Assembly (NCBI GenBank): GCA_965649825.1
Contig: OZ287700.1
Span: 434,001-498,000 of the forward strand
Reading direction: 5' to 3'
DNA length: 64,000 nt
Source: Penicillus capitatus
Taxonomy: Eukaryota > Plantae > Chlorophyta
Positions 15,916 to 36,270 of this stretch are shown in pieces; the stretch's first letter is position 1; the number at the start of each line of letters is the position of its first letter. The notes below the pieces were generated by a model, which did no database searches, was not told the DNA's origin, and was given only the letters and a program-made list of their open reading frames with translations. A program made the translations under genes and the position numbers.

Positions 15916-17475
15916 TCATACGTTCCAACCGGCGTGCCCGGCGTCGTAACCTACGCTCCGCCGCAGCCGCCGAAGATCTAGATCACTTGGATCATCTGAG
16001 AAGGGCGATCGTATGCTGGACGCCCACTTCTTGAGTCGTTCCATCGCATAAGTGCCAAATTTCCCATAGTACCCTCCATCTGTCTGTGCAGGTCGCAAGA
16101 GACGTGGCGCTTCCATACACGATGCACAGCAGCAGCCTTGTAAACGTGCTTTGCAGGCATCGCATGCGATAAAGAGTCGATTGCAGTCGACATTGGCGCA
16201 GTTGACATGGGGCACATGACCTGGACCATTGCACACTTGACAGCGGATGGACGAGGGCAGACCTTCGGCCGTTTCCTTGACATCTAGTCCAGGACGATCG
16301 CATAAGGAGGGCCACGATTTGGACGTACCTTCGGGGACGATGGCCATACGGCCGTCGAAAACGAAGAGACTGCCATCCCATAGTGCACTCCCTTCTTCCT
16401 TAAAGTACTTTTGGACGCCGCCTTCAAGGGAATAGAGATTTTGGAATCCGTTCCTGCGCAGAACGGTCGAATAGATATCGCAACGGATGCCGCCTGTACA
16501 GTACATCTGCAAATTTGTGAGCCGTACAGGATCCAAAAGATCACTGTGTTCATACCAGTACAGGGGTGTCCTTATCGGCAGCCACGAGTGGCTCTGGGAC
16601 GGTATCGGCCACTGGCGTCTCACTAAAGGCGTCTTCGCTTGGTCGAACCGCCCCTTCAAAATGACCCGCATCCCATTCGTAGCCATTTCGCACATCCAAC
16701 ACGATCGGCTGAAGATTCTCACACATCACATTCATGGACGTCCGTCACATCATCATGTGATGTGGGTGAGGACTTTGGCGGCGCAGGTTGGCGCGGTGAT
16801 TGCCTCCTTCAAGCGTGCTTTCCATTCGACAGGGGTCAGTGGAGTGGCGCGTTGCTCTGCCTGTGTGATGGGCAGCGATGCCAGGCCGCCTTGAAGCTGT
16901 ACCAGATTCGGCTTCACCTTCAATCTGAGCTTAGGAAACATATGCTGATCGACCTCATCGCAATTCCACTGTAGCTCCTATCGATCCATCCGACACCATA
17001 CGTCTGACCCATCCTCCTTCAACCGAATCTCACTTCAAAGGCGGACTGATGTCGCACCCAATACACATAGGCCTCTGTATCCGACACCGATCCCGTAAAC
17101 TGTGCGTTCACACCCTGCGAGGAGAAGTAGATGCGTCCCCGGATATCACGCCCTTGCATCCATTCCTTATGTTCTTGCACCACCTGTCACATCACCGCTA
17201 TATGACCACGCCTTTAGAGGCAGCAAGCAATACACGTCGACCTGATCAGGCCGGTCAATGTCCACAAGATGATAGAAATTCACGATCCGATAATCCTTCT
17301 CCTTCACGATCGGCTCCGTCCTTCCCACCTCTGCCGTCTCCCTCGTCCAGCGATGATCACGGTGCGTCGCGCTCGGCCATGTCATCCGTTGAGGATATCG
17401 CCCAATCCACGGCCGACCAAAGATACGCGACGCGCTCGGACATGAACGTAAAGCAACGCGTCGCATCGACAACAT
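15916..17475 (-). CDS. Rhodanese-domain protein, UPF0176/TrhO-like, organelle-targeted (multi-exon)
   Basis: [58 protein letters not shown], and a C-terminal Cys cluster. Confidence 0.85.
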
Positions 17476-17542
17476 TTGATAGATAACGTGCAGCACGTCG
17501 TGAATTTTTCTCGCTCTTCTTCCTACGCGTTTTCGCAGTCAT

Positions 17543-18733
17543 ATGGCGTCGGCCATCTCGATACCACCTACGAAGACGGAATCGCTTCCCGCAGATGTTA
17601 CCGTGCTCCCTATCAAGCTGACGTCTGACAATAAACACACCGACGCCGTCCACGCGCAGAGCTGCCGTCCACGTTTCTCAAAGAAAGACGTGTCGGCGCT
17701 CTGTAGTGTTTTGGCCTTGACGGCGTCGCTTATGATATACGGAATTCTGCAAGAGCGTATCATGACTGTTCCATTCGGTCCAGACAAACGACGATTTCGG
17801 CATTCTCTTTTCTTGGTTCTCTGCAACCGACTGGTCGCCTGTTTCCTGGCGCTGCTGACAGTCTACTTCACCGGAGGGAAGGTGGAGCCCGTTGCTCCTC
17901 TGCATAGCTATGGATTGATCAGCATCGCCAACGTTGTCTCCTCCGCCTGCCAGTACGAAGCGCTGAAATATGTCTCCTTTCCTGTACAAGTACTGGCCAA
18001 GTGCACGAAGATGATCCCCGTCATGGTCTGGCAGTCGATCATTGCACGGGCGCGCTATTCTGTGAGGGAATACCTGGAAGCGACCGTCGTTGCTCTCGGA
18101 TGTGCTATTTTTCTACTCACTGGTGAAGTGAGCTCATCAGGAACGGCCCACGCCTTCCATCGAGGTGCTGTGTACTTCATGGGCGGTGGCATTCTCGTGA
18201 TCTATCTCGCCGTGGACGGTTTCACATCGACTTGGCAGGGCTGGCTCTTTACTGGCTATCAAATGGACATTGGAAATCAAGTGCTCTATACCACGCTCTG
18301 CTCGATCTGTCTCAGCAGTTGTGGTCTGCTGGTCTCCGGAAAATTTCAAGCGGCTCTAGAATTCGTGAGGGATTACCCGGAGGTGTGGTGGTGGATTGTG
18401 GGTATCTCTTTGGCAAGCGCTGCCGTTCAGTTCCTCGTCACGCATACCATCAAAGAGTACGGCGCTCTTGTTTTTGCGACAGTGATGACGACGCGACAGT
18501 GGTTCTCGATCCTGCTTTCCTGTCTTCTCTTTGCCCATCCTCTCACATCTGGGCAATGGTATGCCTCGATGCCGGTCAGCAGAGAATCGATGTATACGGT
18601 GTCGCTGTTTCTAGGTTGGGTACGGTGTTGGTCTTCGGGGCATTGTATCGCCGGTTTTATGAGAAGCACCAATATCAACAACAACAAGCAACAACAACAA
18701 CAGATAATCTCATTAGAACGCAATAACACGTGA
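17543..18733 (+). CDS. Nucleotide-sugar/PAPS transporter (SLC35B/UAA family)
   Basis: YGILQERIMT, QYEALKYVSFPVQVLAKCTKMIPVM, DGFTSTWQ, YGALVFATVMTTRQ; last exon boundary uncertain. Confidence 0.9.
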   Translation: MASAISIPPTKTESLPADVTVLPIKLTSDNKHTDAVHAQSCRPRFSKKDVSALCSVLALTASLMIYGILQERIMTVPFGPDKRRFRHSLFLVLCNRLVACFLALLTVYFTGGKVEPVAPLHSYGLISIANVVSSACQYEALKYVSFPVQVLAKCTKMIPVMVWQSIIARARYSVREYLEATVVALGCAIFLLTGEVSSSGTAHAFHRGAVYFMGGGILVIYLAVDGFTSTWQGWLFTGYQMDIGNQVLYTTLCSICLSSCGLLVSGKFQAALEFVRDYPEVWWWIVGISLASAAVQFLVTHTIKEYGALVFATVMTTRQWFSILLSCLLFAHPLTSGQWYASMPVSRESMYTVSLFLGWVRCWSSGHCIAGFMRSTNINNNKQQQQQIISLERNNT

Positions 18734-19176: not shown

Positions 19177-20483
19177 TTAATAAACACGGCCTCCTCCATT
19201 CACTCGCGGAGCTCCGCTTCCACTCTCAGACATTCCAACTTTTTGGCAAACCAGCAAAACAGCCAAATGAACACTCTCTAAGGATCCAGAGATTGTCACT
19301 TTACGATATCCTGTTTCGGGAGCAACGTCTTCACGATCAGAGACCTTGACACGCGCTCCAGAAATCTAAACAGATCAACACCGGCGCCTTCTCTTATCGT
19401 TTATGGGCAGCATCGGCGTTTACTTGTGTGATTTCGGCAATGTTTTTACCCTTTCGACCAAGAATCGCACCCGTATCCGCATTGGTGACGTCCAGAATGG
19501 TCGTGCAATTTGCGTTTGCAAGCGGAGCCACATGTTGTGAGAGCGAGGCCATGGTTGAGAATCCGCTGCGTTGACCTGACCCCGGAGACAGCGGTTGTTC
19601 TGCATACTCATCATACTTTGGATCCTCTGACAGCTAGAGCAACACCAAAACACAGATCATCATCACCATCTAATACCATCCATCCCCCTCTACTTTGCTC
19701 AGAATGAGACCAAATGCACGCATGATTTGAGAAGTACTGCCTTTGACGGTTACCAAGCGCTCGCTGACTCCAGGCAACAAAGTATCCTGTCCTTGAATCC
19801 TATCGCACATATCACTCTTATGGATGAGTCATATGGCAGGATGCTGTCCAATGCCTCGTTATTACCTAATGTCGGCCTTACAGTCTTCCATGAAGGCACG
19901 GACCGTCGATCCTCCCTTCCCAATAACGGCACCACACAATCGAATCGGAATACAGAGCTTCACACGGAGGTTGCCGTCTTCATCTGTGGCTGGTTCATCA
20001 TCTTCACTCCCAGCTGTTTCTTCTTTGATTTTACCGAGCACCAAATGCACAGCGGTCAGCACAGAATGCAGCGTTCCCGATATCACTGCGATTCTCTCTT
20101 TAGTGCCTAACAAGCGACGCCGACGGTCACAACACAGCACAGGGTCATTACCTCCTTACCAGCGAAATACTCCCCAGCCCTCGACAGCTGAATCCGTGCT
20201 TGTGAAGATAACTGAAATTCGCTGATGGTCGCGCCGCCCTGCGCGCCGACGTCTTGTGTCCGGAAAATAACGTCATGCGTACTTTGCCGATGATGGAGCC
20301 GGCAACGGAATTCGACACAAGGAGCTTCAGGACCGCTTTCTGGTCGCCGCTCGGAACTGAAAGCATAACGCGACCGTCGTGCTTTGCTCGTCGACGGATG
20401 GTGCACGCACCTTCTTGTACTGTCAGTTTCTCTTCGACCTCTTCGACGAGCGTCTCTCCCTGAAACCGCACGCACACACGCAC
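19177..20483 (-). CDS. Triple-KH RNA-binding protein (NOVA/BTR1-like), multi-exon
   Basis: Three GxxG KH motifs: AGSIIGKGGATI, CGAVIGKGGSTV, GAILGRKGKNI; 5' end uncertain. Confidence 0.85.
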
Positions 20484-27552: not shown

Positions 27553-29784
27553 CGGCAGTAAAATGCGTCCGAATAATGAATTATGTGTGTAAACGACGAA
27601 CAAGAAGAGATCGGTATAGCTTTGCACTGCAGATGGACTTACTTCATGGCTTACCCATACCTCAAGAGCATTGATATGCAGAAAGCACCCACCCCTTAAG
27701 TCGGAGGTGTCGGCAAGGTCGACTGAAGATTTCTCTCTCCCTCTTGCAAGCAAGCCAGTTGTTGTCCGATGACACGTCAGTTTTCCGGCGAGTCAAAGTT
27801 TCGTCTCTTGTTTTCAAAAGCATATTCATAAGGAGAAGTCGTATCTTGCCCAAAGAAACGAGCAGACAAAGACAGACGACGGTTTCACAGTGGCTGGCGG
27901 CTCGTCGGCGCCTCTCCGAGCATTGTGCTATAATGGGGTCATTTCGGTCATTATTTTGTCCATTTTTGCGTGTACTGCCGCCAAACGTCCCATCGTGAAG
28001 TTCACAATGTCACATCACTGAAGGTCGCCCGCAGCCAATCAGCTCGCGCCGTTTCCTGTCACATCAGTCACATCAATACCCTAGCATTTAAGCAGAACGC
28101 GCAAACCATAATCGCGTAAACCCGACAAGCCTCGCCTATTCGTTTGTGGATCCCCCCAGGACCCACGGTTTGTTGACGCCCTCGTTGCGCAAGACGGTTG
28201 CCTCGTGCAGTCTTCTTTGCAATTCGGGGGAAGAGACAACGCCGGCGGGCCCTGCGCGGTGCAAACGGACCGATGCATTTCCGGCGGCGGCAAAAACGTC
28301 ACGCGTCTTCGGATGCCTGGCGCGTCGATGGCTCGAAGCTTGTCGCGGTCAGCAACCTACGCCTAGTCGACCTTGGAGCCCACCGACGTTTTTTCTGTTC
28401 TTTTTTAATTATGACGGACTTGCGAGGCCGGTCTCCGGCCGTGGTTCTGGTGGTTTTCATACTTTTTCGTTATGTCGACTATATCTTCGTGGGCAAGGTC
28501 GCTAGCTCCGTGGGTAGTTATTGTTTTTTTTTTTCTTTTTTTGATCTTTTTCGGATGGATTAGGGTTTGACCTGACTCGGTTCCACCGGCAATGATTTCC
28601 TCTGATCATTGTCGGGCCGCGCCTTCTCGTGGCGGAACTGGTTTATACTAAGTCGGCATTTGACAAGAGGAATTAGCTACTTCCGGTATCCACGGTGACA
28701 ATCTTCTTTTCGGATGGATGATCTTTTTTCCGCGCCGTGCAGCTAGCTGCGTTTCCTTTAGGCGAGTGGATAGAACAGCTGCTACGTTCCTCACGCAAAG
28801 CAGACGAAGCTTAACGGTGCGGAAAAAAGAACATCCGTACTAGAAGGAGATTTGACGAAGGCCATCGGGGGAATAGTTCGGGATGTACACGGACGGCGTT
28901 ATAGTCGACGGTGAGGCAGTCATGGTTGGTTTCGGTGGCGGTCCATTCGCAACTGATTTCCGGTGTGTGCTGCTATAGGTTTTGGGCCGATTGAGCAAAA
29001 TCGTACTAAAGATAGTCGACAGAGAACGAACTCCCTTGATGGCATGCGTCTGCTCTACTCGCGACTTCCACCGCTCTGGATGGCAACCCACCTTTCTCAT
29101 TCGAGGTTAATTTCTTCTTTCTCTTCACACTTGTGTTCTATCCTAGGTAGCTGAGCCGAAGCCAACTAGTCGCTGTCCCTCCCATCAGTCAGTAGCATCA
29201 GGTAGCGAGCGCAGCGAGCTTCTTGGACAGAGTTTGGTGTCCTCCCTGCTCAAGGAAGCTGTGGTGATGGATTGGAACAGAGAAGTCGTTGACAGTCGTC
29301 AGCGTAGGCGCTTGACCTGCCTGGTTTTTGCTAGTTTACACTCTGCTAGCGACATTCTCTGTATCCTTTCCTAGGTGCAGCCAACGAAGGCTGGGTCTGG
29401 AAGTCTTCGGGGCCAGTGCAGCCGACTGTGGACGCTGGATTCGGAGTGTCTAGGTAGTTAGTTGCGGGGCTTCCCGCTTTAGATCTGGCTCCGACCGTGC
29501 GTCCAGTGGTCGCTGCCACCCATATGCTCGAGTTACCCGTCTGTTTACTCGACTAGGCGGCATGGGAAATTGCGTAAACAGAAGGTGTTTAGTGTCTTCG
29601 AAGAGATTCTCCTAGAAGCATTGAGAACAAGGATGGTTAACGGCTTCGTTATCACTTGTTCACCTGCATGCGTACAGGAAGAACGCCTTTGTAGCCTCTC
29701 TTTGTCTTTAAGTCCTTTTTTAATAATCCCTTCTTCTGTTTACGTCGACATTACAACGTTTATTTAAACGCCTACTGGCTTTTA

Positions 29785-29873
29785 GCGGTCATCCTTGCCA
29801 CTTTTGTGCGGCGTTGCGCTTGCGACGTCGCGAACAAGGGGTCTGATGAGACGGGTGGCGCCGTCGAAACCGC
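29785..29873 (+). ncRNA. Hammerhead ribozyme A, type III topology
   Basis: Core CTGATGA 29843-49; stem II GACGG/CCGTC; GAAA 29866-69; stem III GCGGT(29785-89)/ACCGC; GTC site cleaving after 29790; stem I ATCC-TTG/CAA-G-GGGT enclosing two hairpins. Confidence 0.88.
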
Positions 29874-30337
29874 ATCGTTATGTACTGTAGCAGAAAGATT
29901 GATTAACGAGTGTGCACCTGATGTATATTACGTTGCAACTGACCTAACTGTTGGTAAGTAAGTATCAAGAACAACAACATCTTTGATGGCTTTGGCTTTG
30001 TAATTATTCTTCCGTTCAAAAAAGCGATTCTCCATCTTACAGCAAGTACAACGCGACAAGCCCTTCTTCGCCTCGCTTAATGTTATCCCGTATCGAGAGC
30101 AGCTTATAAGATAACGAGGCTTTACAAGAACAACAACCTGCCTTCCCCAGAGAAAAATCAGTGCAAGGCGGCGGTAGACTGCGTGAACTACACAGAGTTA
30201 AAAATCGCGAGATGCGTGCGCGGTTTACTTATAAACTGGGTTACTTAGTTCATCACACTTATTGTCTGAGGACGAGGAATTAAAGAAAGAGAACCACGCT
30301 GCAAAGTCGACAGGCTAAGGAGAAAAAACATTCGGCT

Positions 30338-30404
30338 AGGGTGACCGCTGAACGCGACGTAGCACTCGGCGGTTTCGACGGCGCCATCCGTCTCATCAGA
30401 CCCC
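30338..30404 (-). ncRNA. Hammerhead ribozyme B, type I topology
   Basis: Minus strand reads GGGGT CTGATGA GACGG atggcg CCGTC GAAA CCGC [hairpin] GCGG TC^ACCCT; cleavage between plus coordinates 30343 and 30342. Confidence 0.92.
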
Positions 30405-30594
30405 TTTTCCGCACTGCGGCATTGAGTGGAGCGTAACAGCGGCGCACCGGACGCGCCAAAAAACCGCGAGACGGCGAAAGGTGTCGGGAGACTAGCAGCG
30501 CGTAAGACATCGGTCGAGATCCGACACGGAGAGCGAGAATAAAACGCGTAAATCGAGCGCGCGCAGTAACGACGACACGTCAATATAAGACCTA

Positions 30595-30695
30595 AGGGTT
30601 TCGACGGCGCCACCCGTCTCGTCAGACCCCTTCGCGTCGAGGCACCAAAACCCTCGACGCGGTCCGGAAAGATCCGGAACGGCTAGGATGACCCC
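30595..30695 (-). ncRNA. Hammerhead ribozyme C, type III topology
   Basis: Minus strand reads GGGGTC^ATCCTAGCC, hairpin TCCGGA/TCCGGA, hairpin GCGTCGAGG/CCTCGACGC, then GAA GGGGT CTGACGA GACGG gtggcg CCGTC GAAACCCT; cleavage between 30690 and 30689. Confidence 0.85.
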
Positions 30696-31014
30696 AAGCC
30701 CACCCTTCCCCGCTGGACCAATGAACTTCGCCACCAGCATGGGTGACGGCCACTGCGCCCAACGAGGCCGGCCTCCCGTCGCAACAGAGGCGCGCACCTC
30801 GAAGCCAGATGTGGAGGTCATTGGCACCCCCGGAGGGACGCCTCCCAACTACCTAGACACTTCGAGGCTACCCCTTACCCGTCACGGCAAAAGACGAAAT
30901 GCGCGTCGCGGTGCCCCTTAAATACTTGGATGTTGATGCGACCCTGTCAACGTCACCTTGAGGACGGTTAGACTGCCAAAGATGCGCGCTGAGTGGCTGA
31001 ATCGACGAAAAACC

Positions 31015-31088
31015 GATGTGACAGATGGAGATGGAATATTCTGACGTGACAGATGGAATATTCTGATGTGACAGATGGAATATTCCGA
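31015..31088. repeat. 22-bp tandem repeat, three copies
   Basis: GTGACAGATGGAATATTCTGA(C/T) at 31018 (with an extra AGATGG), 31046 and 31068. Confidence 0.85.
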
Positions 31089-31096
31089 TACTGCAA

Positions 31097-31236
31097 CGTG
31101 ATTGGCTATCGGCTGCATCGACGCCTTCCTCCCAGCTTCTTCTTCCGACGGTTAGTATTCCGAATTCGCGTCGTGATTGGCTGATTGCGCGACAAAACGA
31201 TGTGACGCTGTCACATCATCTGAAGGGGTATATAAG
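31097..31236 (+). promoter_or_regulatory. Candidate Pol II promoter (two inverted CCAAT boxes and a TATA box)
   Basis: CGTGATTGGCT at 31097 and 31172; GGGTATATAAG with TATATAA at 31229-31235, about 25 nt before the start of the 300-bp repeat unit. Confidence 0.5.
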
Positions 31237-31261
31237 TGATGACGCGTACCATTTTTCGTCT

Positions 31262-31836
31262 TTCTTTCCGGGAGATACTCCCCCGTAGTTGCGCAGCTCC
31301 AGTCCGGATGCGTCGAACGCGTCGTTCGGTTGTCCGTCATATTGAAGTATTGTACTATCGAAGACCTTCACACAGCGCATGAGACGCTGCCGAGAACGGC
31401 GGCAATCGTGCGGCGGTTGTGGCGGGGGCCGTTGAGCGGCTTCTGCGGCGTCGGGCCCACCCGTTAGTCCCGAAGGCGGGGTAAGGGTCGTCTCCTGTAG
31501 GCGGCCTTTGCTTCGACCTGGTTGAGGAATCTCGGATTGGGGGGACATCCTCGGATGGCCCTTCTTTCCGGGAGATACTCCCCCACAGTTGCGCAGCTCC
31601 GGTCCCACTACGTCGAACTCGTCGTTCGGTTGTCCGTCGAAAAAGATCCTTTCACACAGCGCATGAGACGCTGCCGTCGATGGCGGCAATCGTGCGACGG
31701 TTGTGGCGCGGACTGTTGAGCGGCTTCTACGGCGTCGGGCCCACCCGTTAGTCCCGAAGGCGGGGTGAGGGTCGTCTCTTGTAGGCGGCCTTCCCTTCGA
31801 CCTGGTTGAGGAATCCCGGAAGGAAGGACATCCTCG
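31262..31836. repeat. Direct duplication, ~300-bp period (31262-31553 and 31562-31836)
   Basis: Both copies begin TTCTTTCCGGGAGATACTCCCC and end GGACATCCTCG, sharing long identical blocks such as CGGCGTCGGGCCCACCCGTTAGTCCCGAAGGCGGGGT. Confidence 0.95.
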
Positions 31837-32422
31837 TGATTACCCAAGGCACTTTCGTGATTACCCATTTCATTTCGTGATTACCAAAAATGGCATTTCA
31901 TTTCGTGATTACCAAAAATGGCATTTCATTTCGTGATTACCAAAAATGGCATTTCATTTCGTGATTACCAAAAATGGCATTTCATTTCGTGATTACCAAA
32001 AATGGCATTTCATTTCGTGATTACCAAAAATGGCATTTCATTTCGTGATTACCAAAAATGGCATTTCATTTCATTTCATTTCGTGATTACCCCACCAAAA
32101 GAATGGCATTTCATTTCATTTCATTTCGTGATTACCCCACCAAAAGAATGGCATTTCATTTCATTTCATTTCGTGATTACCCCACCAAAAGAATGGCATT
32201 TCATTTCATTTCATTTCGTGATTACCCCACCAAAAGAATGGCATTTCATTTCGTTTCATTTCATTTCGTGATTACCCCACCAAAAGAATGGCATTTCATT
32301 TCGTGATTACCCCACCAAAAGAATGGCATTTCATTTCGTGATTACCCCACCAAAAGAATGGCATTTCATTTCGTGATTACCCCACCAAAAGAATGGCATT
32401 TCATTTCGTGATTACCCCACCA
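31835..32422. repeat. Satellite built on CGTGATTACC and ATTTC, with 28-, 45- and 35-bp sub-arrays
   Basis: 18 copies of CGTGATTACC; spacings of 28 (31876-32044), 38, 45 (32082-32217), 50 and 35 (32267-32407). Confidence 0.97.
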
Positions 32423-32519
32423 AGTTGTGGTCCCAACGGCGGTGCGTTTGCCAACGCATCGTCGAGCCGTGCCTCCTCGTGGCGGGACTGGATAACGCTA
32501 AATCGGCAAATACTCTTAA

Positions 32520-32582
32520 GGGGTCTGATGAGACGGGTGGCGCCGTCGAAACTGTTCGGTCACTCGACTGAGCAGTCACCCT
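32520..32582 (+). ncRNA. Hammerhead ribozyme D, type I topology
   Basis: GGGGT CTGATGA(32525-31) GACGG gtggcg CCGTC GAA ACTGTTCGGTC actc GACTGAGCAGT C^ACCCT; 11-bp stem III; cleavage after 32577. Confidence 0.93.
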
Positions 32583-33570
32583 AGCCACGAAGCTGCCGAC
32601 GCGTAAAGACTGCGTCGGTTGATGTATCATCATCGTACCTTCTTTTTTCCTGTTTGCCTTGTTTACATAAAGCAGCATAAACCGTCGCCTGCTGTTCAAA
32701 CGTTTTGTTTGTACTTTTACAGGTAACAACCGTTCGAGCGCTCCTTTTTCGTGTATGTCGTACGTCTTCGTGTCCACAGCGAAACAAAAGCACAAATGAC
32801 ATCCCAGGTAGGCCTTCCCTCATCAAACGCTAATCAAGCGGGGAGTGAATGCGTGACACTAGTTTTTCTTTATCTAACGACCCATACAACAAGCTGTCTT
32901 CCCAGTATTAATATATAGGAGCCTTCACGCGGAACACCTTATGTGTCATTATCACGCCTTGCACGTTAGCATCTTCACCTTTCGTACTCTTGTGACGTCG
33001 TCCCTCGTCCAAAGCACGCTTTCGCTGCCTCGATGACCCGCGCACTGTTTGTTGCCGGTCCGGCTGTGCACCGAGAGCGATAACAATCCAAGATTTTCCG
33101 ACTATGAAGACAAAGGTCACGAAAGATTTAGACTGTCTCCACTAAATACTCGCTTGCTGCCGTGTCTCTAGGACCAAGAATGGGAAGCTACGTGTAGGAA
33201 ATGAACCTCTAACTGTCATCTGTGTAGCCACCGGAAGCGGTGAAGCCGTCACATAACCATCCAGGCGCGCTGACCATCGGTCGCGACGGATGTCGGCTCC
33301 CGACCTAACTTCCTCATAATGTAAGGGGTGTGGTTATTCTGCATGCACTAGGAGTTCGCAGCTGTTAGGACGTAAGGGTAGGAAGTCCATGACCACCTTG
33401 GGTATATAAGGTCGACAATTCACTTTGTAACAACTCCTGTTCGTATTGCCTCAAATCTGATTGTGTTTCTGTCGTCTCGACGCGCAAAGACTCAGCTGCC
33501 TTATGAACCACTATTCCATTTGATTCCCGACGCTACGTCTCTTCCTTAGCCTCAGGCACGTTTTGACCTT

Positions 33571-34180
33571 TTAGAAAAAGGTCGACAATGGTCGTAAGCC
33601 TTTTGCGTTTGTCCGTTTTACGAATGTCTCGCGCATTTCTCCCGGTATCCTTGATTCTCCACATCTGCCTGCCTTCTGGGTCTCATTCGACAGCCAATCT
33701 TGTCGTTGATGGAACAAAGTGGATCTTCTTGGCGCTACAAGATGAACTTTGTGACTGATGCCGTTCATGACTACTGTGAAATCTTGATATTCGCAACGCC
33801 CTTTCATCCATTGCTTCGTGCGAAACGCCTGAAATAAGTACAGCTTCGTTAAGTGAGTGTGTATCTCGACAAGAACGAATAGAACAGAGATCGATCCATT
33901 CGCTTTCTCCGCCGCCATTTCGCGACAGAAAAGAGAGAAAAGGGTTTCGGTTTCCAAATCGTCACGAGATGATCTCGTCGTTTCTCTCGGCAACCGTTCT
34001 GCGACCAATAAATCTTTGGAAAAGCATGCATCTCTGTGTGCATTTTACAAACAGCTCTGATTTCAGTTTCACGTGTGTTCGTAGAGAGATGGCAAACTGG
34101 GTTGATGGCAGGAGCCGACGAACATTTGGTGCATCCAAGTCTACTTCGCTGCCTGTCACGTCAAAGCCCGGGTGTCTAGA
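33571..34180 (-). CDS. Hypothetical protein (structure uncertain)
   Basis: Two overlapping frames of ordinary-composition ORF head-to-head with ESF1; no recognised motif. Confidence 0.3.
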
Positions 34181-34216
34181 CTGAACTCTGGCGGCTGTTG
34201 TTTCTGAAAAAGCACG

Positions 34217-36270
34217 ATGGCGCCGAAGAATTCGGCAAAGTCCCGCGCCACCGTCGATGACGCTCGCTTCGTCAAGATTAAAACGGACCCACGGTTTCGA
34301 ACGTTGAAGAGCAAGAAAAGGCAAACACAACCCATCACCGATACTCGCTTTGCTCGTATCTCTCTTCCACGTCTAACTCCGTTCGCTTTGAGTTTCTACA
34401 GGCGCTCTCGAGGATCCCGCCTTTCAGGAAATCCCTCAGATACCCATCGACAAATATGGACGCGAGGTAGGTTGGATGACCCAAACCTTCATCAACCTTT
34501 GACGACATTGCTCAGAATCGCTCTCTCTTCCGACGTCCGACTGGGGAGCATCTTAATGATCACGAGCCGAAAGGGGCACTGCTCATGCAAAGGATGCTTG
34601 GACTCTGCCCATCTGATTCGGAAACGGAATCTTCATTGGCATCTCTCTCCGAAGAAGAAGATAGAAAGGAATGGGGCGCTGGTATCTGGGCAGCCAATCC
34701 AGATGAATCGATCTCCGAAACGAACGCGACAAGGAGAATTGCCGTTGTTGACATGGACTGGTCCAAAGTCTCTGCGGCGGCGTTGCTTGCTCTCTTTCGA
34801 TCTTTCGTCTCAGAATCTCCTGCATCGGTACAGAACGTCACTGTCTATCTGTCAGACTACGGAATAGAGCGGCTTCCAAAGGAGGACCGACAGGGACCCA
34901 GTGCGCTCGGTCTCTTCAAACCCGAATTATCGACCGAGAAAGATGAGAGCGGTGATGATCACATTGATCCAGAAGAACTGCGACGGTATGAGAAGTCCAA
35001 GTTGCGCTACTACTATGCCGTCGTCGAGTGCATCTCTGTTGATGTCGCAGAACGACTCATGAAGGAACTGGACGGCAGCGAATTCGAAACCTCTCGATGT
35101 ACATTGGATCTGAGATATATCCCAGACGAAGAATCTTTCCTCGGTCGTCCCGTACGGGATTCGGCAGAAACGGTACCGGGCGATTTCGAGGCGCCCGAGT
35201 TCGAATGCAACGCTCTTCAAAAGACGAATGTCAAACTCTCCTGGGATGATGACGACGAACATCGGCTGAAAGTCGTCCGCCGCCGATTTACAGAAGAGGA
35301 GCTACAGGATCAGGACTTCTCGGCCTATCTGGCTTCAGAGAGCGATGCCGACAGCATTGATGGCGACCGAGTGCCAAACTACGAAGCTCTGCTGAAGGAT
35401 GTCCACTCCGAGCCGAACGCAAGGAAGGGATCCAAGGCCACAATACGACAGAACAGCGCATCGGATGTGTCTGATACCGATTCGGATGACTGTCTGGCTT
35501 CGGCTCTTGTGCTCGATCGACGAAGAAAGGCTCGGAAAGACGGAAAGAAAATCTGGGACAAGTATGAGAAGCGTCGGAGTGAGAAAGTGCAACGGCAGAA
35601 GCGCCGAGGACAGTTCAAGGTTGACGGTAGCGCATCGGATTCCGACTCTGGTCTCAGCTCCGTCGAGGACAACGATACAGACGGTCTGTTGATCGAGATG
35701 CCCGAACAAGAAAAAGACATCGTCATGACACTTCCAGACTCGCCCAAAGAGAAACCTGCACCCACATCACCAATCAACGATCAGGAGGAAACGAGAAGAG
35801 TCACGTCCAACATCGAGCTGCTGATGATGGATGACCAAATGCTCAAAGTACTGGCCGCCAAATCATCATCCGACCTCTTGTTGTGCTATCGGTTGACAGG
35901 AGGCACGTGTGGGTCAGTGTGTGGACGGGGTGGCAGCAGTGCTTGGTGTGAAGAAGAGTAAGAAAAGACTGAGTCACCGGGAGCGTGTGCGGCAAGGCAT
36001 CGCAAAGAAAAAACAGAGAGCCGTAACAAAAGAAGAGGGCGACTTGACAGGCTTCAAAGTTCTTCTATACTACAGACGTTCGTGTGTCGAACATTTTATT
36101 ACATCTAGGTGAACGTAGAGGATCCTCGTTTTGAGGAATTGCTGCAATCCACGGACTTTGCCATTGATCCAACTGATCCAGCATTCAAACGCACTTCCGG
36201 TGCAGAAACCATCTTGCAGCACGTACGGCAGAAAACCAAATCCTGTGAGAAACGCCTTTCTTTGTACTGA
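34217..36270 (+). CDS. ESF1: Pre-rRNA processing protein ESF1 (multi-exon)
   Basis: DDARF...DPRF, DKYGR, TRRIAVVDMDW, RYYYAVVEC, LDLRYIPD, C-terminal NUC153-like DPRFEELLQSTDFAIDPTDPAFK. Confidence 0.92.

Follow-up and report, generated by a model that had tools for sequence, protein, structure and literature searches.

Four predicted hammerhead ribozymes of one family, in type I and type III layouts, in a gene-free island of the green alga Penicillus capitatus

To our knowledge, nearly all hammerhead ribozymes of eukaryotic nuclear genomes have been traced to retrozymes, Penelope-like elements or satellite repeats, and a cellular role has been argued for a few cases only, namely the hammerheads in introns or 3' untranslated regions of amniotes. 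No report of natural hammerheads in chlorophytes was found in the searchable literature. Here we describe four copies of one hammerhead family, HHR1 to HHR4, clustered in a gene-free island of Penicillus capitatus. They lie in a stretch of 64,000 nucleotides (contig OZ287700.1 of assembly GCA_965649825.1, positions 434,001 to 498,000 of the forward strand), which is called the window in the following and from whose first letter all coordinates are counted. The four copies are very probably true hammerheads, and judged from their sequences they are predicted to cleave. We favour the reading, with a probability of about 0.5, that they act in cis and form the 3' ends of three promoter-bearing noncoding units in the island.

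The copies agree with the hammerhead class at large (PMC3088659) in the CUGANGA...GAAA core, the pairs G10.1-C11.1 and A15.1-U16.1, the GUC site, the three helices and a likely pseudoknot, but they belong to a family that is unreported by Rfam, combine one core with both layouts, type I and type III, inside 2.8 kb and have, in the type III copies, a large (39-53 nt) and branched loop 1. The long terminal repeat (LTR) retrozymes of plants (Cervera et al. 2016, PMC4918200) resemble the locus in bringing type III hammerheads to a nuclear genome of the plant lineage, in being noncoding, and in having pairs of sites a few hundred nucleotides apart from which ligatable RNAs could arise. However, their LTRs are ~350 bp long (300-400 bp) and each holds a type III hammerhead, whereas here only 35-44 nt are shared and the pairs on one strand combine a type III with a type I copy. 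Furthermore, one of the copies is syntenic between species, and no dispersed copies were found in the 64-kb window or in the 20-kb loci of relatives. A primer-binding site (PBS) for tRNA-Met (TGGTATCAGAGC, up to 2 mismatches) is absent from 29785-32582, and window-wide there are 6 matches against 4.6 expected. A polypurine tract, the other priming signal of such retrozymes, was not found either, although no search was aimed at it. The non-LTR retrozymes and satellite-DNA hammerheads of metazoans (PMC7229834) share with the locus the type I layout, and the spacing of 347 nt found here falls within their repeat size range. They are, however, built of tandem units of 150-400 bp, each of which contains a type I hammerhead, whereas in the alga, a member of another kingdom, no tandem unit contains ribozymes and the units are non-homologous outside the ribozyme. 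Penelope-like elements (PLEs; PMC8557442) also show inverted and direct hammerhead-bearing pieces, but they have an open reading frame (ORF) for a reverse transcriptase (RT) with a GIY-YIG endonuclease (EN) and carry minimal type I hammerheads in their pseudo-LTRs (pLTRs); the island has neither RT nor EN, and its hammerheads have a full helix III and occur in both permutations. The nearest functional analogy is the hammerhead clusters that flank genes in prophages and bacteria (PMC3088659), in which several ribozymes of one family likewise bracket transcription units, apparently for processing and not for replication, although here the locus is eukaryotic and nuclear and the bracketed units are noncoding.

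A 28-nt string made up of core and helix II (CTGAYGAGACGGRTGGCGCCGTCGAAAC) occurs in four exact copies, with 0 mismatches, in the whole window (plus strand, 29843-29870 and 32525-32552; minus strand, 30399-30372 and 30625-30598), and gave no match in 100 shuffles. A first-pass annotation of this DNA had placed four hammerheads of one family at exactly these positions, and had assigned each of them its own cleavage site. Indeed, the 12-nt site block (GTCAYCCTWGCC) is found window-wide only at 29788 (plus), 30345 (minus), 30692 (minus) and 32575 (plus), one beside each core and thus at all four expected places. The predicted cuts, identical to those first proposed, fall after C29790, at 30343/30342, at 30690/30689 and after C32577. 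A generic hammerhead descriptor, which asks for CUGANGA and GAAA on the two sides of helix II, for no fewer than 4 bp in each of the three helices, for A15.1-U16.1 as the first pair of helix III and for a non-G residue at position 17 (H17), returned four cores and four complete motifs from the window, against a mean of 0.21 cores and 0.010 complete motifs in 200 dinucleotide shuffles. Beyond the four, no further hammerhead-like core was found in the 64 kb. The copies are the following.

29785-29873, plus strand: HHR1, type III; C17 is 29790, predicted cut between 29790 and 29791
30332-30406, minus strand: HHR2, type I; C17 is 30343, predicted cut between 30343 and 30342
30595-30695, minus strand: HHR3, type III, with C at core position 7; C17 is 30690, predicted cut between 30690 and 30689
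32518-32588, plus strand: HHR4, type I; C17 is 32577, predicted cut between 32577 and 32578

The family thus occurs in two circular permutations. In the type III layout (HHR1 and HHR3) the core comes after the site and the 5' strand of helix I, and the 5-bp helix III is open; in the type I layout (HHR2 and HHR4) a closed helix III hairpin comes first and is followed by the site and the helix I strand. All copies pair AAGGGGU with AYCCUW in helix I and GACGG with CCGUC in helix II, the helices I, II and III measure 5-7, 5 and 5-11 bp, respectively, and every copy has a GUC site. The helix III of HHR1 consists of GCGGU (29785-89) and ACCGC (29869-73), and its helix I, AUCCUU(G) with (C)AAGGGGU, encloses a 39-nt loop 1 containing an 11-bp hairpin; the tail GCCAC is located at 29797-29801. 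HHR2 has AAGGGGU at 30406-30400, C3 of the core at 30399, and a closed helix III (ACCGCcGAg...uUCaGCGGU) of 9 bp with one mismatch; ACCCUA and then the tail GCCGA follow its cut site. In HHR3 helix III is formed by GGGGU (30695-91) and ACCCU (30599-95), and a 53-nt loop 1 holds two hairpins. In HHR4, AAGGGGU is found at 32518-24, helix III extends to 11 bp (ACUGUUCGGUC/GACUGAGCAGU) and is closed by ACUC, and the cut site is followed by ACCCUA and the tail GCCAC. The stem III strands that had been quoted at the outset (ACCGC/GCGGU, ACCCU/GGGGU and ACUGUUCGGUC/GACUGAGCAGU) are found as given.

The core (C3 U4 G5 A6 N7 G8 A9 ... G12 A13 A14, with A15.1-U16.1 and G10.1-C11.1) is intact in the four copies and in an orthologue of HHR1 from a congener, N7 being U except for the C in HHR3, and all 13 core positions are unchanged in these five independent copies. 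What the copies have in common is limited to 35-44 nt around the core and the 12-nt site block; the flanks are unrelated in a self-BLAST of the island. The helix partners are paired in 92% of cells, compared to 27-54% after sliding the partners. It should be noted that when the core and the G-rich helix I strand are held fixed and the flanks are shuffled, a minimal site arises by chance in 4-14% of trials per copy. The tail GCC(R)N, made up of the three to five bases that follow helix I, is conserved despite lying outside the helix. It could form a pseudoknot of 4-5 bp with (G/A)UGGC of loop 2, the four central pairs of which form in 23 of 24 cells; such pseudoknots between stem I and loop II are frequent in natural hammerheads and required for fast cleavage (Perreault et al. 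2011, PMC3088659). According to ViennaRNA, whose energies leave tertiary contacts uncounted, the hammerhead fold is the minimum free energy (MFE) structure of HHR4 and lies 0.5 kcal/mol above it for HHR2, whereas the fold constrained to a hammerhead is 3-6 kcal/mol above the MFE for HHR3, HHR1 and the orthologue in the congener.

The congener is represented by two haplotype contigs (L003 and L004, 99.2% identical, in ERZ26696514), which show the same gene order around the island and identities to the window of 94% for the GMPPB protein, 87% for the ESF1 protein and 86% for ESF1 DNA. Both contigs contain exactly one hammerhead core, at the position orthologous to HHR1. The identity of this orthologue to HHR1 is 88.8% over 80 nt, as compared to ~70% in the alignable upstream noncoding DNA (the 5' region of the unit A introduced below) and 86% in the ESF1 coding DNA. 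The differences affect helix I, one helix II pair (C-G to U-G) and loop 1, in which there is a 12-nt indel, whereas the core is unchanged, in line with the selection on the family that had been proposed from the window alone. The homology between the two species stops ~20 nt past HHR1, and from 29894 to 34130 nothing is common to both: HHR2, HHR3 and HHR4, together with the intervening DNA, are absent from the congener and specific to the lineage of the window. At the corresponding place the congener has an unrelated 1.8 kb (L003 16352-18156), including, on the plus strand at ~17380-17783, an ORF of 137 aa without a Pfam match or a counterpart in the window. In the L004 haplotype the loop 2 sequence GUGACG breaks the proposed pseudoknot.

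A wider search for the family added little. Neither the island nor any hammerhead core is present in L005, a more distant relative, and a protein search with ESF1 recovered no additional close relatives. Extra copies were found neither in the other 58 kb of the window nor, beyond the orthologue, in the 20-kb loci of the two relatives. A pattern scan of metagenome contigs gave one match, in a 1.2-kb contig (L002, Ga0099817_1511750; 358-389, GGGGUCUGAUGAGACGG-N6-CCGUCGAAAC) that has the same core and helix II; with a C-U mismatch at 15.2/16.2 and no partner for helix I, this is not a complete ribozyme in cis. The L002 core lies upstream of an ORF with an ending like that of a trypsin-type protease. 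Scans of viral contigs with two patterns and of GTDB genomes revealed no family members.

The island that holds the cluster extends over 6.6 kb (~27.6-34.2 kb), between a prolyl-hydroxylase-like gene that ends near 27560 and ESF1, which starts at 34217. It had been described as free of genes and helper ORFs. In agreement with this, a six-frame Pfam search of 29500-34200 at E≤0.1 returned nothing apart from one noise match, and no RT, endonuclease or transposase. The genes of the window are eukaryotic (aquaporin, ABC1 kinase, UAA transporter, ESF1 and GDP-mannose pyrophosphorylase), and their best named relatives, with ~50-63% identity, are from Tetraselmis, Ostreobium, Chlamydomonas and Bryopsis. 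Since these are chlorophytes, the assignment of the DNA to a green alga, made without knowledge of its origin, is borne out by the genes that flank the island.

The noncoding sequence around the ribozymes can be divided into three putative units, A and Y on the plus strand and Z on the minus strand, with the following components.

27985-28095, plus strand: P_A, promoter-like stretch of unit A, with GTCCCATCGTGA, TGTCACATCA, CCAATCAG, a CCAAT box and TATA-like CATTTAAG at 28085-92; putative promoter
28100-29790, plus strand: body of unit A, putatively noncoding and presumably a single transcript, which would end at the HHR1 cut
28578-28640, plus strand: three-way-junction module, unit A copy, 63 nt, with a 7-bp outer stem and two hairpins
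29440-29495, plus strand: R hairpin of unit A (UUCGGAGUGUCUAGGUAG ... AGAUCUGGCUCCGA), 290 nt upstream of the HHR1 site
30323-30328, minus strand: run of six U (U6), 6 nt past the HHR2 site block; possible terminator
30343-30689, minus strand: 347-nt RNA that HHR3 and HHR2 could release, with 5'-OH AUCCUAGCC... and ...GCGGUC 2',3'-cyclic phosphate ends and both ribozyme cores kept
30797-30867, minus strand: R hairpin of unit Z, ~105 nt upstream of the HHR3 site, with G-C to A-U in the outer stem relative to the other copies
30917-30924, minus strand: TATA-like TATTTAAG, putative start of unit Z
31000-31240, plus strand: P_B, promoter-like stretch, with three 22-nt repeats containing GATGTGACAG, two ATTGG boxes, TGTCACATCA and TATATAAG at 31229-36; putative promoter
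31262-32577, plus strand: putative body of unit Y, with two 290-nt repeats, minisatellites and the three-way-junction module, followed by HHR4
32428-32490, plus strand: three-way-junction module, unit Y paralogue, 9 nt before the helix I strand of HHR4

On the reading that we favour, the transcript of unit A would run from the TATA-like box at 28085 through a structured body to HHR1 at its end, where the cut after C29790 would detach the body (...GCGGUC 2',3'-cyclic phosphate) from the ribozyme and the read-through. Unit Z would start from the TATA-like box at 30924-30917 and proceed over its R hairpin to HHR3 and, 347 nt on, to HHR2 and the U6 run. Unit Y would lead from the TATA box at 31229 over the repeats and the three-way-junction module to HHR4, and after the cut at C32577 the ribozyme would stay at the 3' end of the RNA. 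In each case, as is standard for hammerheads, the 2'-OH of C17 would make an in-line attack, leaving a 2',3'-cyclic phosphate and a 5'-OH, while the core would be held by helices I-III and probably by the pseudoknot of tail and loop 2. Since the type III copies cut upstream of themselves, they would free the finished RNA body from the ribozyme and the read-through, whereas the type I copies, cutting downstream of themselves, would remain on the RNA. The likely role is the formation of 3' ends and the control of read-through for non-polyadenylated noncoding RNAs in a compact genome; cleavage would, in addition, restrict the antisense overlap of units A and Z, which converge and whose cut sites are separated by 552 bp.

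The 5' end AUCCUA of the 347-nt RNA can re-dock on the AAGGGGU of HHR2, so that ligation to a circle would be possible. Moreover, the helix I strand and the tail are common to all copies, which would make ends and cores interchangeable, as circularisation needs. The fold of this RNA is not rod-like and not unusually stable (z about -1).

The proposed units contain conserved RNA modules. The three-way-junction module shows 4 compensatory pairs between the copies of units A and Y in a consensus fold, and has an orthologue in the congener (L003 ~19835-19895, minus strand). An R hairpin, with compensatory changes, lies upstream of both type III copies, which is in favour of the proposed units. Its arms are invariant over ~20 nt (UUCGGGGUGUCUAGGUAG ... 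CUUCACAUCUGGCUCCGAA; GUGUCUAGGUAG / CAUCUGGCU), whereas the inner hairpin or loop is variable, and the two single copies in the window compare with five in tandem in the congener (L003 18483-19015, minus strand). The R hairpin had no Rfam match that would make it another ribozyme class, and is possibly a small-RNA precursor or a protein-binding site.

The first 600 nt of the unit A body share ~70% identity with the congener and contain indels of lengths not divisible by three; P_A includes a 37-nt run identical in the two species. P_B is located between the divergent units Z and Y. In unit Y the direct repeats (31262-31553 and 31562-31836, 290 nt) are 84% identical, and the minisatellites (31834-32423, ~590 bp) consist of 28-, 45- and 35-nt units (CATTTCATTTCGTGATTACC...). 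The octamer GTCACATC occurs 23 times in the window, compared to ~2 occurrences expected for an 8-mer, and clusters in intergenic promoter-like stretches (e.g. at 28009, 28058, 28067, 31015-31022, 31199-31217, 24342 and 25246); this excess suggests that it is probably a general promoter motif of the host genome. Unit A also contains a 45-nt inverted repeat (28700-28744 and 28808-28852, 80% complementary, 63-nt spacer) that would give a long hairpin, for which Rfam returned only a weak, sub-threshold match of the miRNA-precursor kind.

Several points weigh against hammerheads that end three noncoding units. In the Rfam search by which the first-pass annotation had proposed to check, and possibly refute, the copies, none was called: at the gathering score the whole window gave no match to Hammerhead_1, Hammerhead_3, HH9, HH10, the type II model or RAGATH-1. 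At E≤10 on 29600-32800 the sole match was that of HHR2 to RAGATH-1-hammerhead, with 19.5 bits against a cut-off of 56.3; the orthologue of the congener was likewise unreported (E≤10 on the congener island), and the same threshold on 27900-29800 gave nothing useful. We ascribe the miss to family-specific models that are insensitive to loop 1 insertions of 39-55 nt and to an 11-bp helix III. The outcome is a failed membership for those curated families and a rejection neither of the fold nor of the hammerhead class, but it does mean that the assignment rests on the descriptor and the comparative evidence. Part of the latter is weaker than had been claimed. The helix III strands do differ between copies and yet pair, with compensatory changes from C-G to U-A in HHR4 and from G-C to C-G in HHR3, next to several other pairs with one-sided changes; however, two compensatory pairs in six sequences are not above column shuffles (99/500; 155/500), and the covariation is not statistically significant. 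In the L004 haplotype the orthologue (18153-18323, corresponding to L003 18150-18320) has GCAGUC, and hence a helix III mismatch, and GUGACG in loop 2, so that the constraint is not absolute. The absence of HHR2-4 from the congener implies that the larger part of the cluster is of recent origin, as could be expected of a duplicating element no less than of a gene family, and the change from type III to type I is easiest via a tandem or circular intermediate, pointing to a retrozyme-like history. The 3' end that HHR1 would generate has no obvious protective structure. Finally, we infer the transcription, the promoters, the transcript ends, the cleavage in vivo and the biological role from these data.

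Such a retrozyme-like history, which we consider rather unlikely, is the main rival of the three hammerhead-ended units. The cluster would then descend from a non-autonomous RNA element: a type III copy upstream and a type I copy downstream would cut its transcripts, a host RNA ligase would circularise the excised piece, and an RT encoded elsewhere would supply new copies, so that the locus would be a nest of these, some of them domesticated. The excised RNA would be the 347-nt RNA of the minus strand (junction of GCGGUC with AUCCUAGCC) and possibly one of 2,787 nt on the plus strand (junction of GCAGUC with AUCCUUGCC). Eukaryotic genomic hammerheads are typically linked to retrozymes and PLEs (PMC7761336, PMC8557442), and on both strands the order of type III before type I leaves both cores in the excised RNA, where the common helix I strand and tail would allow any 5' end to dock on any type I core. 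A circular or head-to-tail intermediate is the simplest route to the permutation itself, HHR2-4 are younger than the separation from the congener, and an island without an ORF is what a non-autonomous element would leave. Yet the copies have just 35-44 nt in common and are without long terminal or tandem repeats, the island lacks a tRNA-Met PBS, an RT and an endonuclease, and no further copy turned up in the remaining 58 kb or, apart from the orthologue, in the loci of the two relatives. HHR1 and the promoter-like stretch are, moreover, syntenic and conserved between species, and the 347-nt RNA, unlike the circles of retrozymes and viroid-like RNAs, is not unusually structured. Remnant pLTRs of a PLE, in tandem or inverted partial copies with hammerheads, are highly improbable. 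It is true that PLE insertions form such copies with hammerheads in the pLTRs, and that canonical ones occur in some Chlamys elements of streptophyte algae (PMC8557442), but no trace of RT or GIY-YIG was seen in six frames and no repeat >44 nt surrounds the ribozymes. PLE hammerheads are also minimal type I motifs with almost no helix III (PMC7761336), whereas here helix III has 5-11 bp and two copies are type III, so that this explanation already fails on the defining features.

The remaining alternatives concern what the motifs do. The R hairpins, one to five per transcript, could be the product of a small-RNA or hairpin-RNA precursor that the downstream type III hammerhead trims in place of polyadenylation. 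The position of an R hairpin upstream of both type III copies, the five tandem copies of the congener and the arms that are invariant over ~20 nt beside variable loops agree with this. The paired stem, however, is short and interrupted, no R hairpin immediately precedes HHR2 or HHR4, the type I copies, and the idea, improbable as it stands, refines the reading of hammerhead-ended units and does not exclude it. More improbable still is that the copies are inactive relics, or that they represent a repeated motif for the binding of protein or DNA which just looks like a hammerhead, without self-cleavage in vivo. Copies that the Rfam models leave unscored, the minimal sites that chance produces in 4-14% of trials when the G-rich helix I strand is kept and the flanks are shuffled, and the related core in L002 without a usable site would all be compatible with relics. 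They are hard to reconcile with 13 of 13 core positions intact in five independent copies, with the compensatory helix III changes, with the conserved orthologue of HHR1, and with a 12-nt site block confined to the four places demanded by the fold, two of them upstream of the core and two downstream.

Other candidates were tried and rejected. A viroid-like rod does not fit the 347-nt RNA, which is no more stable than its shuffles. A miniature inverted-repeat transposable element with 44-bp terminal inverted repeats (HHR1/HHR2) is not tenable, as the congener has an orthologue of the left arm but none of the right one, and a target-site duplication is not visible. A telomerase RNA was considered for unit A; AAACCCTAA lies at or before the predicted start in the congener and reads AAACCATAA in the window. 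For unit A a coding gene was dismissed as well, since long ORFs are lacking and the lengths of the indels are not divisible by three.

The copies form a new and private sequence family within a known ribozyme class, and their setting is unusual: both permutations lie next to each other, the putative noncoding units have promoter-like stretches, one orthologue is syntenic and retroelement features are lacking. The type I/type III permutation, the promoter-like stretches and the lineage-specificity of three copies had been missed in the first-pass annotation. Beyond the hammerhead-ended units, we tentatively suggest, though as a doubtful extension, a ribozyme system that is kept by the host independently of retroelements: one family in two permutations would serve as 3'-end maker and terminator for a small family of structured noncoding RNAs of RNA polymerase II, and the type III-type I pair would be a natural cassette, flanked by ribozymes, from which the 347-nt RNA would be released with ends that dock on each other and that a host ligase would join to a circle. 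If cleavage and expression prove true, the locus would clearly exemplify a host that shapes its noncoding transcripts with a hammerhead. The same ribozyme sequence would then work in two neighbouring layouts, type I and type III, which bears on the origin of permuted ribozymes.

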